NCBI GenBank assembly: GCA_029953675.1
Contig: JAMWBK010000003.1
Coordinates: forward strand, 3,100,001-3,164,000
Direction: 5' to 3'
DNA length: 64,000 nt
Origin: Rhodosorus marinus CCMP1338
Taxonomy: Eukaryota > Plantae > Rhodophyta
Part shown: positions 58,309 through 64,000 of the stretch, piece after piece
Position numbering within the stretch: the stretch's first letter is position 1
Layout: every line of letters begins with the position of its first letter
The notes under the pieces: generated by a model
The model's input: the letters and a program-made list of their open reading frames with translations, nothing else
Told to the model about the DNA's origin: nothing
Database searches by the model: none
Made by a program: the position numbers and the translations under genes

Positions 58309-59370
58309 TTAAATAATGGAGCAGGAAAACGGCTTTATAATTCGTCGATTCCTGTAGTACTGGGCCACAGACATCTTCGCCCCGCGTTCATTGGCGGACG
58401 CTGGGCTGGCCTCGATCGCGCTGTCGTACGCAAGGTGCTCAAGCCGGAGCTCAGTAAAACCTGGGGGAATTGCGATAATGGAGCCATTGTTTGAGATGTC
58501 CAGCTTTTTCAGACTTGTCATCGTTCCCATTGTCACAGGCAGCTCTTTTAGTTCGTTGCCGGCAATGTAAATCTCCTCGAGACTAGTCAGCTCAGAGATT
58601 TCCTCAGGGATCTGCTTGAGATTGGTCCGGCTCAGGTCGAGCCGTCGAAGCGATTTCAGCCGAGTCACTATGTTCGGAAAATCACCAAAGTCGTTCATCA
58701 TGAGGGCAAGCGACCTGAGCTGCTCGAGATTTTCGAGTTCTTCGTGAAGCAGTTCAATTTGGCACGATGCAAGACCAAGGCTCTTCAGGCTCCTAAGCTC
58801 AGTGATGATAGTGGGGAGTTGAGGTCCGAGTGGGTTCCCGGAGAGAAAAAGTTCTTCTAGTTCGAGCCGCCCAACGGTAGCCGGGAGCGATGTCAGTTTG
58901 TTTCGCGCCGCAGATAGGGAGCGGAGACGAGGGAAGGCCTTTGAAAAGTTTTCAGGCAGCGCCTGGATGCAGTTGCCCGAGATATCCAGGCTGAGCAAGT
59001 TTGGAAACTCCGAATCACACAGCGTATCAATAAGGCCATTCTCCTCGCGATTATTATTTGCCAGAGTCAGCTCCTTCAGGTTGTGAAGTCTTAGAACCGT
59101 GCGCGGCACTCTACCGAAACGATTGTCGCTCAAGTCAAGTTTGGAAACTGACTCGGGAAAAATACCTTCCGCAATGTGTTGCTCCTGAAGTCCATTTGAG
59201 GATGCAAGGACGCAATCAACATCCTCTCGGCCGGGGATTCCCAAAGCCTCCCTCAGAAACTCGCTAAATCCAATCCCAAGATCAAGCTCGCTCACATCCA
59301 AACTCCCATGACGAAATTCTCCAAACTCTTTCTCCTTTCTCTTCAACGCTTCTATGAAGGTCTCGCTCAT
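58309..59370 (-). CDS. Leucine-rich repeat protein
   Basis: 353-aa ORF with about 10 LxxLxLxxN repeats (LKELTLANN, LLSLDISGN, LRSLSAARN, LEELFLSGN, LRRLDLSRT, LKKLDISNN). Confidence 0.9.
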   Translation of the reverse strand: MSETFIEALKRKEKEFGEFRHGSLDVSELDLGIGFSEFLREALGIPGREDVDCVLASSNGLQEQHIAEGIFPESVSKLDLSDNRFGRVPRTVLRLHNLKELTLANNNREENGLIDTLCDSEFPNLLSLDISGNCIQALPENFSKAFPRLRSLSAARNKLTSLPATVGRLELEELFLSGNPLGPQLPTIITELRSLKSLGLASCQIELLHEELENLEQLRSLALMMNDFGDFPNIVTRLKSLRRLDLSRTNLKQIPEEISELTSLEEIYIAGNELKELPVTMGTMTSLKKLDISNNGSIIAIPPGFTELRLEHLAYDSAIEASPASANERGAKMSVAQYYRNRRIIKPFSCSII

Positions 59371-59599: not shown

Positions 59600-60291
59600 T
59601 CAATAGACGACTATAAAAAACAGATGATTCCGTACGCATGTTGGGCGATTGGCACTTCTGTTGTTGGCTTGCGATCGCTGGTTGATCGATCTCCGCTATC
59701 TACAATTCAAAAGTGTAGAGTATAGAGCGACGTGTCTTTCCTGATGCTAGGTCCGCCTGAGGTCTTGGGAAGGCGAGTTACGCGACCGTACATAAGTTTG
59801 AGGATGGTTCGTGGTCTCCCAGGGGGAAAGGTGGGTCCCAGATGGGATATGCGCTGCCATGAACTCTCGAGACCCGAAGAGGGTGTTCGGGATTACGTTA
59901 CGGATAGAAAGAGTGGATCATGTCTCTCGGTTTCCTGGCCTCTATTCCCATGATGATCGATGTTCCCGCGTTGCAAAAGACGATTCCACAACACGTGTCC
60001 CCCACCTGCATATATTGCATATACTGGCACCACTCGACATGTTAAGCCTTGTGAGATCACCTTTAGTTCTGGCTCTCGAGCGGCGACAATTTGAGCACTA
60101 GGAGCTGCAAAAAAGTCATGATTCATATGTTCGAGGCTGAAAGTGGTTAAATACTCTGCCGTCAACATCCAACGTCGTGAATGCGAGTCGCGAGTGTCCC
60201 ACAAGGGCTTGGCGCTCGATGTTGGTGGTGGAACTTTAATGGTTACCAGGGCGGCGCTAGCCGATGAAACAACTTGTTTGGGGTATCTCAA
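59600..60291 (-). CDS. Possible small multi-exon hypothetical gene
   Basis: Frame-compatible GT-AG joins can be drawn (EPELK|VGDTCCGIVFCNAG...SFYP|AYPIWDPPFP...). No family recognised. Confidence 0.25.
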
Positions 60292-60449
60292 GCTTCAGAT
60301 CTGATACTTGCATGTTGTAGGTTTCGTAATGCATTTGAGAGGCAATTTGTACTCGATTTGCTGTGTTTAGAGGAATGGATCAGTGAGGTGAACAGGGTTT
60401 TGACATGACTTCGGCGATGTAAATGTATGCGATGTATTGGTTTTGAAGG

Positions 60450-62955
60450 ATGGAAACGGATACGGATGGGACTTTGGGCTCCGAATTGAGCTCTGCTGTG
60501 AACTCCATGGACAGAGTCGAAGGAGATCGGGAGTTCGTGGAAGACTCGAAAGCTTTGGACAGGCTAAAGGACGATGTTGCTTTTTGGAAGAGCAAGTCTG
60601 AGGAGCTGGAGGATGAGGTGTCCAGACTGAGGGTGATGTTGGACGGGGAGAGGAAACTGCGAGCGGACTCGAAAAGAAAAAAAGTTGTCGTCGTTCCGGT
60701 TGAACATGTGAGGCATACTGTTCGGGAGCTTCTGCCTTCCGACCTCCGCGCCTGTCCTGAAGTGGCCATTGACGCGCTCATGAAGGGCTTCACAACTCGA
60801 AAGGACTTGTCGGACCTCGGAGACGTTTGCTCACATATTAACCAATCGAGATCATACCAGATCATCGAAAGCTTCTTTAGAGTCGTGGTTGAGGTTTTGG
60901 ACACGAAGAAAGAGCATCTCAAACAGAGGGACGCTCAGCTGTCTCCTGAATGGTACAAGGAACCCTGGTATGTACTCCAATATAATGGTAACTTGAGAAA
61001 ATCGGCAAGCTTCTTCGACAGCTTGATGGACTACCTCGAAAAGCTTGGATTCCGAAATCTATTGCTGCACTCCAGGACAGCTCTCCCCGCAGATGAAATA
61101 CCGCACGGGGTTGGTGATGATTACAGCGAGTTCGTAGAGAAGGCATCGAGAAGAGGTTTCAGAGTTGCTACTGAGGCCGTCTTGAGCGAGACGTCGGTGG
61201 ACCACAGCTGGTTCCGAACAGCAGTCAACGGGTCTCAGCGGTATGCGGACTACTACGTGCAGGTGAACGGTAGAGAAAAGATAAACGAGTTTGTTCGGGA
61301 TGGTGATGTAGTTTGTACCTATCGTGATCCCGATGGTCTGGTGCAGCAGCTGGTTTGTTCCCATCCTGGAATCGACAGGACCCATGGGATATGGGTCGCC
61401 ATCCAGGGCAAAACATATCAGTTCTTCAGGGATTCCTATCCAGATCGAGTGAAACTCAACCTTCGAAATCCGCTTCTATTGGAAGAAATTTTCAGATTGT
61501 TGGGTGAAGAGTTCTCTGCGGGAACCCTTGGAAAACGATTCAGTAAGGTTGACAAATGGTTGCTGCATAGGAGTTCACCGGTGGACGGGGTGGGCGATGA
61601 ATCCCACGCCCTAGTGGCGCTTTTCAAGAGCCTCATAAGGCATCTGTGTCCCATTGGCATTGTCCTTCCAGATGCTGCAAAAGCTGAGGATTTGCTGGCT
61701 TCCTTCGCCGGAATGAGAACGACGATAGCTCGGAACCAATGCTCATCCGAAGGCGACCTAGTGGGTGCTCATGGTTTGCGCGGCGCATTGTTTCACATGA
61801 TTCTAATGGAGAACATAGCTCCGTTCTGGAGAGTTTTGTCAAAGATGCCGCAGCTACCGCCTGGAGCATCCTGGACGAATTTCCTTGAGCACAACGAGGC
61901 GTACGATATGTTTCTTCATCCTATTGGTGTGAGAGAAAGAATCCTGGAATCGTTCCCTTCGAAACAGCTTCAGATTCGTAAGCAAAGCCATCAATATGCG
62001 GGCAGATTGATGGACTGCCTTGATAAGAATCAGCGTAGATTGGCTGGAGCGATATTTTGCCTGTACGTAACTCCTGGAGCGCCGTCAATCTTTTCTGGAC
62101 TGGAGCTTGGGTAAGCACCCCGCGTCTGCCACTCAAGGACCCCACAATACGCAAGTTCTCCCGAGTGGTCCCTCACTACCGATGTCAAATCCGTGGCCGT
62201 TCTTTCTGTTAGCAAAAGCAGTGGCACCCAGTACGCCCAGGAACAGAAGGTTCTCAGATGCGAATTGCTGAGATCCTCCGGATTTATGGCAGACGAGGAG
62301 GATTGCTATGAGATACGCGACCTTCATCGGGCTCCTCTGACAGAGGAGGATATTCAACAAGCTGATTTCGCACACTCCAGCGTTATTCAACTGATCCAAA
62401 GACTGAACCAACTAAGCATGAAGTGCTCGGCCCTGAGCTCCAACCAGGTAGGTGTCCCCATCGTGGACAAAGCTTTTTGCTGGGGCAGATTTGTCCGAAA
62501 ATGAAGACGTTCCTAATCGCACTGGTCGCTTCCCATCTCTCATCAAAACCTGCGTAGGCCTACCCTATTGAAACTACTCAACTGCAAGTCGTGTGTTTAA
62601 TTCGAGCCGATAAAGAGTCAGTTGTACTCTGTCTGGCCAACGTTTCCTGCCAACCGCGTTCTTGCAAGATTCCAAAGTGGCAGATAAATCGCTACACGGA
62701 TGTTCGTTCCTCTATGCAAAGCTCAACTGGGACACGATTGCTGGACAAGACCTGACCATTGTTTTCTTTAATCCCCCTGTCGTTTTACAGTCTCCGAATA
62801 CCTCTCAAGGACTTGTTCATGACCTGCTGACTAATGACTACTTGAGCCTCGAGCTGGAGGATGGTATCTATAATTTGACATTGTCACCGCATCAATGTCT
62901 AGTTCTCGACATGCGTGGGCGCGGTGGTGACAGCAGTGAAGGCCCTTTAATTTAA
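60450..62955 (+). CDS. GH13 trehalose synthase (TreS)/amylosucrase-like protein with N-terminal coiled coil; catalytic residues substituted
   Basis: Colinear with TreS from memory: PEWYK, DYLEKLG, RGFRV...TSVDHSWF, LNLRNP, ESHAL, PQLPPGASWTNFL, TPGAPSIFSGLELG, RDLHRAP, VLCLAN, LTLSPHQ. Splicing of the last exons is approximate. Confidence 0.8.
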
Positions 62956-62994: not shown

Positions 62995-64000
62995 TTAATA
63001 GATTCCCGCATTAGGTTGCGGAGATGCTGCCGGAAGGCTTGACACGCTAGGACGGCTCCGAAAATCAATATGATCCTGTAAAATAAGTTCTCGTGTAAAG
63101 AACTTCCGATTTTGCCCGGAAACTCGATCAGATCTTCTCTTTTCGTACGGGTCAAACGATGCCGGACGCGCTGGTCTGGCGAGTAGGTCGCGTGTCTGTG
63201 CATGGTGAGCAGATGTTTTCACCCTGTAATAGTGCAAGAGCATGTTAGAGATATCCGATGCGGCATTTTGTGTTAAAGCCACAGCAAATCTTACCCCGAG
63301 CTCAGCAATTTTGACCGAAAGCAGGTCACGGACAGATGGAGACATTTTCTTCAAGCTAAATGATAAGCCGCTTCTCGGGTTATCTACCGCAAACTCGCAT
63401 AGATTTTCAAGCCCTTCGTTAACAGAACCCACCGAATTAATCTTCTTCAAGATATCTGATAATCGGCTGTTGAGGACTACGGCGCTCTTCTCCTGGTTGG
63501 GGTTTGGCGCCGGTGTCATGCTGCTTTTGGCGCTGTTGCCGGCAGGATCAAAATCAATGGTGAGCTCGTCAGTTGCTGCTAACTTGTTGTGGTTGTCCAT
63601 TGAACCGAATGCACTTTTATGTCTGTCCAATACCTTTCTGCGACCACCATTCGTTCGCCGTCTTTCCGACTGCAACCTTCGCGGAAACCTTGTTTCCGCA
63701 GCATTGTTTCGATGTCAGCGAGGATTGGCGGTTTCGTTTCCGTAGGTACCTGGGAAAGGAGCTCGTAAACCCGTTCACCCTCTAATTTGATCAACTCGTT
63801 CAATATTGTACGCACGCATCGGAGAGGAAGGAAAGCATCCTCTATGCGAGAATTTGCGCTTCGTCGCTCGTGTAAGGCGAGGAACACATGGGCGTCTCTC
63901 AGAAGCGATGGTTTATGCACACCCTCAAAGTTGCTTCGGGTCAACTTCACAAGGCACTTTACGCAGGTCCGCATGCTCCTTGAAATACTCTGACTCGGGA
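62995..64000 (-). CDS. XMAP215/ch-TOG/MOR1 microtubule polymerase, C-terminal part only; gene continues beyond the right edge
   Basis: VKCLVKLTR...LLRDAHVFL...PLRCVRTILNELIKLEG and LSDILKKINSVGSVNEGLENLCEF resemble the ch-TOG/MOR1 C-terminal helical domains. The exact stop is uncertain. Confidence 0.8.

Follow-up and report, generated by a model that had tools for sequence, protein, structure and literature searches.

We propose that NDN08_003700, a gene of the red alga Rhodosorus marinus CCMP1338, encodes a probably cytosolic pseudoenzyme of glycoside hydrolase family 13 (GH13). The protein would belong to a red-algal family that lies between trehalose synthase (TreS) and amylosucrase, and would have kept the fold, lost retaining catalysis and persisted through a non-catalytic function; we give this reading a probability of about 0.6. 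The gene lies in a window of 64,000 nucleotides of eukaryotic nuclear DNA (contig JAMWBK010000003.1 of assembly GCA_029953675.1, positions 3,100,001 to 3,164,000), to which all gene coordinates below refer unless another contig is named. An earlier, sequence-only reading of the window had described a TreS-like GH13 protein with a coiled-coil N-terminus and without the Asp-Glu-Asp catalytic triad, and had proposed that it binds glucan or acts as a scaffold or sugar sensor. The core of that description was borne out: the triad is lost, yet the protein is expressed, conserved and under purifying selection, with a ratio of nonsynonymous to synonymous substitution rates (dN/dS) of 0.14. We use the term pseudoenzyme operationally, for a protein that has lost its catalytic residues, is expressed and evolves under purifying selection; NDN08_003700 has all three properties, and its inactivity itself is predicted from sequence.

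Loss of the active site from a retained GH13 fold

NDN08_003700 is confidently predicted to fold as a GH13 protein, with TreS and amylosucrase as about equally good structural matches. An AlphaFold2 (AF2) model based on a 28-sequence alignment reached a predicted local distance difference test (pLDDT) score of 84.7 and a predicted template modelling (pTM) score of 0.84. It lays out a long helix (residues 27-76), a helical N-domain (84-163), a (β/α)8 barrel whose domain B is enlarged, and a domain C of the β-sandwich type. The Pfam profile PF00128 matched at 25.4-29.7 bits against a gathering cutoff of 22. In a Foldseek comparison with the PDB, TreS 5x7u was the best match (E=1e-29, template modelling score TMt 0.78), and amylosucrases and sucrose hydrolases matched at E ~1e-27. 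The likeness to TreS goes well beyond chance.

Within this fold the catalytic centre has been dismantled. Translation, together with alignments to TreS and to the family, verified the substitutions that had been described in all four conserved regions (Table 1), including EAVLSETSVDH at residues 242-252 in region I. In HMMER alignments with solved TreS structures (5x7u, E=9e-16; 4wf7; 8uqv), the nucleophile Asp of TreS pairs with Ser365 (codon AGT, 61542-61544), its acid/base Glu with Asp408 (GAT, 61671-61673) and its region-IV Asp with Glu483 (GAG, 61896-61898), and a 52-sequence family alignment puts these residues in the same catalytic columns. The GH13 triad is replaced by Ser/Asp/Glu in R. 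marinus, by Cys/Asp/Glu in the orthologue P0003 and by Cys/Asp/Gly in the orthologue P0004. A one-residue shift in region IV, which would align His481 with the catalytic His, was tried and rejected, as the Asp is missing either way and the family alignment backs the unshifted register.

The losses listed in the sequence-only reading are real, and the list was incomplete: it lacked the exchange of the region-I Asn-His for Ser-Glu, that of the region-IV His for Asn, and an 11-residue deletion covering the GGYDxxxY motif. Of the canonical helpers of the −1 subsite only Arg363 is kept, the region-I His having become Glu247 and the region-IV His Asn482, with the GGYD loop deleted. What is left of this loop (residues 210-221) has an AF2 pLDDT below 50 and is the sole poorly predicted part of the barrel.

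Position 408 differs between strains, being Asp in the window strain (VLPDA) and Asn in a 91%-identical MMETSP strain (P0006, VLPNA). The replacement at the acid/base position is not fully fixed within Rhodosorus.

NDN08_003700 is a real, expressed and correctly modelled gene, because the spliced model matches the GenBank protein and the transcript products are spliced. The predicted product is 100% identical to the GenBank entry "hypothetical protein NDN08_003700 [Rhodosorus marinus]" (P0001 in our set). The open reading frame (ORF) that starts at 60450 translates to the peptide quoted earlier; the description of the gene as one long intact ORF had to be given up, since there are four exons and this ORF is the first of them. 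The exon model is confirmed by P0006, the product of MMETSP0011 from the sister strain, in which all three introns are spliced out. Introns 1 and 2 are also spliced out in L001, a transcript contig of 3.2 kb that comes from a related Rhodosorus strain and shows 89-93% nucleotide identity, and the C-terminal strands encoded by exon 4 are kept in the alignment of P0004 and P0005. Two further transcript isoforms retain an intron, namely intron 2 (62448-62557) in P0007 and intron 3 (62702-62790) in P0002 from L001; both run into early stops and lose domain C, and both occur alongside the fully spliced P0006.

Table 1. Features of NDN08_003700, with positions in the window and amino acid (aa) numbering of the 734-residue protein
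Feature	Position	Strand	Remarks
Whole gene, start to stop codon	60450..62955	+	734 aa, four exons; model reproduces GenBank protein P0001 exactly
Exon 1	60450..62110	+	aa 1-554, phase-2 end; coiled coil, N-domain, TIM barrel with degenerate regions I-IV, domain B
Long N-terminal helix	60528..60677	+	aa 27-76; AF2 block pLDDT 73-85; heptad pattern, leucine-zipper-like
Helical N-domain	60699..60938	+	aa 84-163; AF2 pLDDT 86-98; matched by the N-domain of amylosucrase/sucrose hydrolase
β2-α2 loop remnant	61077..61112	+	aa 210-221; 11-residue deletion relative to all relatives removes the GGYDVSxY substrate loop
Region I, ATEAVLSETSVDH	61167..61205	+	aa 240-252; Asp→Glu, Asn-His→Ser-Glu
Extended domain B	61251..61469	+	aa 268-340; signature YVQVNGREKI...C.YRDPDG...DRTHG...YQFFR..YP..V.LNLRN, near-fully conserved
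Region II, GKRFSKVDKW	61530..61559	+	aa 361-370; Arg363 kept, nucleophile Asp→Ser365
Region III, GIVLPDAAKA	61656..61685	+	aa 403-412; acid/base Glu→Asp408
Region IV, NFLEHNEAYDM	61878..61910	+	aa 477-487; His→Asn482, Asp→Glu483, Glu→Ala484
Exon 2	62213..62447	+	aa 554-632; L001 transcript junction maps to 62117/62214
Exon 3	62558..62701	+	aa 633-680; domain C begins
Exon 4	62791..62955	+	aa 681-734 and stop codon at 62953-62955; domain C ends; spliced form is P0006

A red-algal family with repeated loss of catalytic residues

A word-indexed protein search recovered four relatives only. When 1.84 billion representatives were searched exhaustively with a profile, 147 proteins came up at E≤1e-30. 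The top tier of these 147 matches forms a distinct family that has bacterial sister groups and whose named members are red-algal: Galdieria sulphuraria XP_005707911, Cyanidium KAK4537254, Gracilariopsis chorda PXF44851 and Porphyridium purpureum KAA8494957, which carry the automatic labels "trehalose synthase" or "maltose α-D-glucosyltransferase". Eighteen members of the red-algal type keep the motifs GGYDVSxY, D..NH, GKRxDA, PEV and HHDE near-invariantly. NDN08_003700 bears the family signature and is placed in the red-algal clade, which has 72.5% support in a neighbor-joining (NJ) tree.

It is doubtful that these red-algal proteins are rightly annotated as trehalose synthase, and the specificity of the family may be a different one. 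With TIGR02456, the TreS equivalog model, NDN08_003700 scores 62.6 bits and the intact red-algal relatives 150-182, against a cutoff of 678.35. Mutagenesis of Deinococcus radiodurans TreS identified N253, two residues after the acid/base, and E324, in the NHDELTLE motif, as essential for maltose-trehalose isomerization; the isomerase activity is lost even when E320 or E324 is conservatively exchanged for Asp (PMC11342931). In the corresponding segments NDN08_003700 has PDAAK and EHNEAYDM, and most intact red-algal relatives have PEVVR and HHDETYLG, with Val in place of N253 and Gly in place of E324. Because the TIGR02456 scores fall far below the cutoff and the isomerase residues are absent, the red-algal genes are not demonstrable TreS genes. 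One pathway map of C. merolae includes "TS: trehalose synthase" (PMC13306765), and doubtful labels of this kind affect the reconstruction of trehalose and maltose metabolism in red algae. We found no paper that characterizes a red-algal member of the family in the literature searched, and the genes around the bacterial sister proteins showed no operon for sugar metabolism from which a substrate might be guessed.

Four proteins make up the Rhodosorus clade (NJ bootstrap 100%): P0001 from the window, P0006 from the sister strain, P0003 with 43% identity, and P0004, an MMETSP transcript product with 42% identity. The orthologues show losses of the same kind as NDN08_003700. Across the clade, the Asn-His of region I is replaced by Ser-Glu, Asp-Gln or His-Gln (SE/DQ/HQ), the nucleophile Asp by Ser, Cys or Cys, and the His-Asp of region IV by Asn-Glu, Ser-Glu or Glu-Gly (NE/SE/EG); the acid/base Glu is Asp in P0001, P0003 and P0004 and Asn in P0006. 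Seven of the eight canonical active-site positions are lost in all three lineages (P0001/P0006, P0003 and P0004). We called a position family-invariant when no more than one of the intact red-algal sequences departs from the common residue, which gave 128 positions. Nineteen of these are changed in all three lineages, with a significant enrichment at the active site (hypergeometric P=3.9e-6). In each lineage most family-invariant positions are kept (81/121 in P0001, 92/120 in P0003 and 86/128 in P0004), including all the signature residues of the N-domain and domain B. The deletion of the GGYD loop occurs in Rhodosorus only.

Catalytic motifs are also degenerate in a second part of the red-algal tree, where P0005 (on contig L002), P0015 and P0016 fall in the clade that contains Gracilariopsis (84% support). 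P0005 and its intact relatives come from different samples. P0005 reads GKRLDSV / ISDV / EDHNE, keeping the nucleophile Asp with E→D and D→N changes at the other two positions, and P0015 reads GKSLNAS / VPNI / ENHDE. A single ancient dead paralogue uniting these three proteins with P0001, P0003 and P0004 was considered and rejected, as 0/200 bootstraps supported it. Because P0005, P0015 and P0016 never group with the Rhodosorus clade, the alignment and tree indicate that catalysis was lost at least twice independently in the red-algal family.

Degenerate motifs were observed outside the red-algal clade as well, in P0021, P0026, P0044, P0047, P0054, P0056, P0104 and P0137. Examples are GKYVDAV / LPSV / ENQDE and GRCPEAV / IPTV / ESQDE, and P0021 and P0026 are sisters in the tree.

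The loss in Rhodosorus is old, with the protein maintained since, because the orthologous loci are conserved, the clade has 100% bootstrap support and dN/dS is 0.144 (Nei-Gojobori, window versus sister-strain transcript; dS 0.275, 680 codons). This ratio is similar across the helix, the N-domain, the barrel and exons 2-3. The divergence of P0003 from its cyanidiophyte homologues (p-distance 0.51) is within the range of intact members (0.48-0.57), and the P0001 and P0004 branches are somewhat accelerated (0.63 versus about 0.5). The loci of R. marinus and P0003 (contig L003) can be considered orthologous because they have in common both the exon-1/intron-1 boundary and a divergent neighbor. The intron-1 donor falls on the same Gly codon in the two loci (GG|GTAAGC in the window and GG|GTAGGC in L003). 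A gene for a leucine-rich repeat (LRR) protein (LRR_8/LRR_4, E≈1e-24) lies on the opposite strand at 58309-59370 (−), about 1.1 kb upstream of the GH13 gene and divergent from it, and L003 encodes, at its positions 1201-2472 (−) and in the same divergent arrangement, an LRR protein with 39% identity to that of the window (E=7e-49). This head-to-head LRR/GH13 gene pair is conserved between the two loci. No neighbors in common with the intact Porphyridium gene or with the contig of P0165 were found.

Two observations concern the flanks of the gene. In L001, about 1 kb precedes the start codon (positions 1-1015, compared with about 60110-60449 of the window), of which only the proximal ~180 nt and short patches align; this segment may be an unusually long 5' untranslated region or the result of an assembly running into the shared promoter region. 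On the other side, an opposite-strand ORF of 226 aa at 62995-63675 (−) has its tail ~40 bp past the GH13 stop codon, and had no Pfam match.

Conserved surfaces and possible functions

The heptad-like segment recognized in the sequence-only reading is supported by the model and by its periodicity. It falls in the long AF2 helix, with L36, L39, V43, W46, S50, L53, V57 and L60 at a/d positions, and the a/d hydrophobic periodicity of residues 33-60 (score 0.82) exceeded that of 300/300 shuffles. Probably, this helix is an oligomerization element. The idea that the coiled coil was acquired by the pseudoenzyme as a scaffold was not upheld: heptad periodicity is also significant in the intact Galdieria and Cyanidium proteins and in P0164-P0166, P0010 and P0175. 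Because catalytically intact red-algal members have the same pattern, the helix is an ancestral feature of the family. The family-invariant N-domain residues A109, G113, D119, C127 and F142 are all retained in R. marinus, and the domain-B residues N273, G274, R275, K277, E280, C289, D293, D309, R310, T311, H312, G313, Q324, F325 and R327 are kept in all dead lineages. In agreement with the earlier reading, we saw no presequence. The N-terminus is acidic and lacks presequence-like features, which fits a cytosolic location; the protein is probably cytosolic.

If the pseudoenzyme reading is correct, the protein may have persisted through a non-catalytic function that was already present in the ancestral enzyme. 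Such a function would be carried by the invariant surfaces, that is, the heptad helix, the N-domain and the enlarged domain B. In its most likely form, the protein would assemble through the heptad helix and then bind or regulate a partner that takes part in the cytosolic metabolism of α-glucans or disaccharides; binding of a sugar by the former active site would be less favored.

Four points weigh against the pseudoenzyme reading. No partner, carbohydrate-binding module (CBM) or interaction motif was identified for NDN08_003700, and a non-catalytic partner is purely what we infer. In principle, the residues that have replaced the nucleophile (Ser or Cys) and the acid/base (Asp) could support some altered chemistry. 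Our searches for an intact Rhodosorus paralogue are weak negatives: a Porphyridium protein query (P0019) gave no Rhodosorus match and also missed the known Galdieria and Cyanidium homologues, and a pattern built from the intact-family alignment gave no Rhodosorus match either among contigs from metagenomes and transcriptomes. A regulator of such a paralogue and a stand-alone protein are not separable on these results. Finally, the dN/dS estimate comes from one pair of close strains.

A broader form of the proposal, which we put forward tentatively and as possible rather than probable, takes in the family as a whole. It would be a red-algal GH13 family mis-annotated as TreS, with a specificity of its own and an ancient non-catalytic second function residing on the helix, N-domain and domain B. 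At least two independent losses of catalysis, one in the Rhodosorus clade and one in a clade related to Gracilariopsis, would have exposed that function while these surfaces remained invariant. Copies without catalysis would on this view serve carbon storage in the cytosol, or compatible-solute metabolism, as dedicated regulators or structural components.

Among the alternatives, the one that survives best is that the dead site still binds α-glucan, maltose or trehalose, and that the protein is a starch-granule scaffold or sugar sensor comparable to ISA2 or PTST. PTST consists of a coiled coil and CBM48, and ISA2 is the inactive subunit of the ISA1 complex. The retained GH13 fold and the heptad helix would suit such a role, as would the probable location in the cytosol, where floridean starch is made. 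Plant starch pseudoenzymes offer a precedent, such as BAM9, which is reported to activate AMY3 (PMC12046210). The active site argues against sugar binding. Apart from Arg363 the −1 subsite has been replaced, and no conserved binding pocket is evident because the replacements differ between orthologues in region I, at the nucleophile and in region IV; in Rhodosorus the GGYD loop has been deleted in addition. Pfam detected no CBM20, CBM48, CBM53 or other carbohydrate-binding module in NDN08_003700, and a coiled coil that is ancestral is not scaffold-specific. The analogy with ISA2 holds for the retention of a fold after catalytic loss; it also needs an active partner paralogue, for which the weak negative described above is the result in Rhodosorus. 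We consider this explanation rather doubtful.

According to a second alternative, the protein is an enzyme with changed chemistry, in which Ser365 (Cys in the orthologues) would be the nucleophile and Asp408 or Glu483 the general acid/base. Potential nucleophiles do occupy the old position, Ser in P0001 and P0006 and Cys in P0003 and P0004, the acid/base Glu has become Asp in three of the four proteins (P0001, P0003 and P0004), Arg363 is conserved, and the gene is under purifying selection. We know of no GH13 enzyme that works with a Ser or Cys nucleophile, and this chemistry is unlikely because the 91%-identical strain has Asn in place of Asp408, the supposed acid/base. The replacements in regions I and IV vary between clade members, only Rhodosorus has lost the substrate loop, and the effect of Glu→Asp exchange at E320 and E324 in D. 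radiodurans TreS (PMC11342931) also speaks against it. Taken together, these points make a changed chemistry quite improbable.

Decay, in which the gene would be a functionless remnant turning into a pseudogene, could be suggested by the multiple active-site losses, the accelerated P0001 and P0004 branches and the intron-retaining isoforms, but it is largely refuted and hardly credible given reading frames intact in at least three lineages that are mutually only 42-43% identical, a dN/dS of 0.144, 81-92 of about 120 family-invariant positions kept, correctly spliced mRNA, and conserved intron position and synteny.

Comparison with known systems

TreS provides the best sequence match among solved structures (5x7u from Thermobaculum terrenum; D. 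radiodurans 4tvu; Mycobacterium 3zo9/4lxf), with E=9e-16 when the protein itself is compared and 5e-81 when the family profile is used, and has the barrel, domain B and domain C in common with NDN08_003700. Three features of TreS are missing from NDN08_003700, namely the catalytic triad, the His residues of regions I and IV, and the GGYD loop; TreS in turn lacks the N-terminal heptad helix and the helical N-domain. Amylosucrases and sucrose hydrolases (1g5a, 3ucq, 7esh, 2wpg, 3cze) have the same five-part architecture as NDN08_003700, including an N-terminal helical domain. Foldseek aligned ~700 columns with them, ~100 more than with TreS, at a TMq of 0.64-0.67, above that for TreS, and the family-profile matches reach into the N-domain, starting 35-45 profile positions before the barrel. 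The family-profile score is lower, however, at 175 bits versus 276 for TreS; NDN08_003700 lacks the catalytic residues, and the heptad helix is not part of amylosucrase. The earlier description of the protein as TreS-like therefore stands for its nearest solved relatives in sequence and fails for the TIGR02456 model and for the architecture, which is equally near to amylosucrase.

The closest comparison is with the red-algal proteins labelled TreS. These are 26-36% identical to NDN08_003700, fall in one NJ clade with it, and have the same heptad helix, N-domain and NGREKI...DRTHG signature. The difference lies in the motifs GGYD, D..NH, GKRxDA, PEV and HHDE, which are kept there and lost in the Rhodosorus clade.

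Further afield, ISA2, BAM4, BAM9, rBAT/SLC3A1 and 4F2hc/SLC3A2 are glycosidase folds that have lost catalysis and act through protein-protein interaction. The likeness to NDN08_003700 is that a glycoside hydrolase fold has remained under selection after catalytic loss. The differences are that they belong to other glycoside hydrolase families or subfamilies, other lineages and other parent enzyme families, and that NDN08_003700 has no transmembrane anchor of the kind found in the SLC3 heavy chains. Pseudoenzymes derived from glycoside hydrolases organize plant starch metabolism, and in the literature searched we found none comparable described for the cytosolic floridean starch of red algae. 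NDN08_003700 is a clean and testable candidate: it is ancient and expressed, selection has maintained it, and its active site has been dismantled with precision. That it is a previously undescribed, long-lived GH13 pseudoenzyme of an uncharacterized red-algal family, ordinary in kind, is a solid conclusion. If the broader proposal were true, the dead copies would be the red-algal counterpart of the plant starch pseudoenzymes, derived from a different enzyme family.

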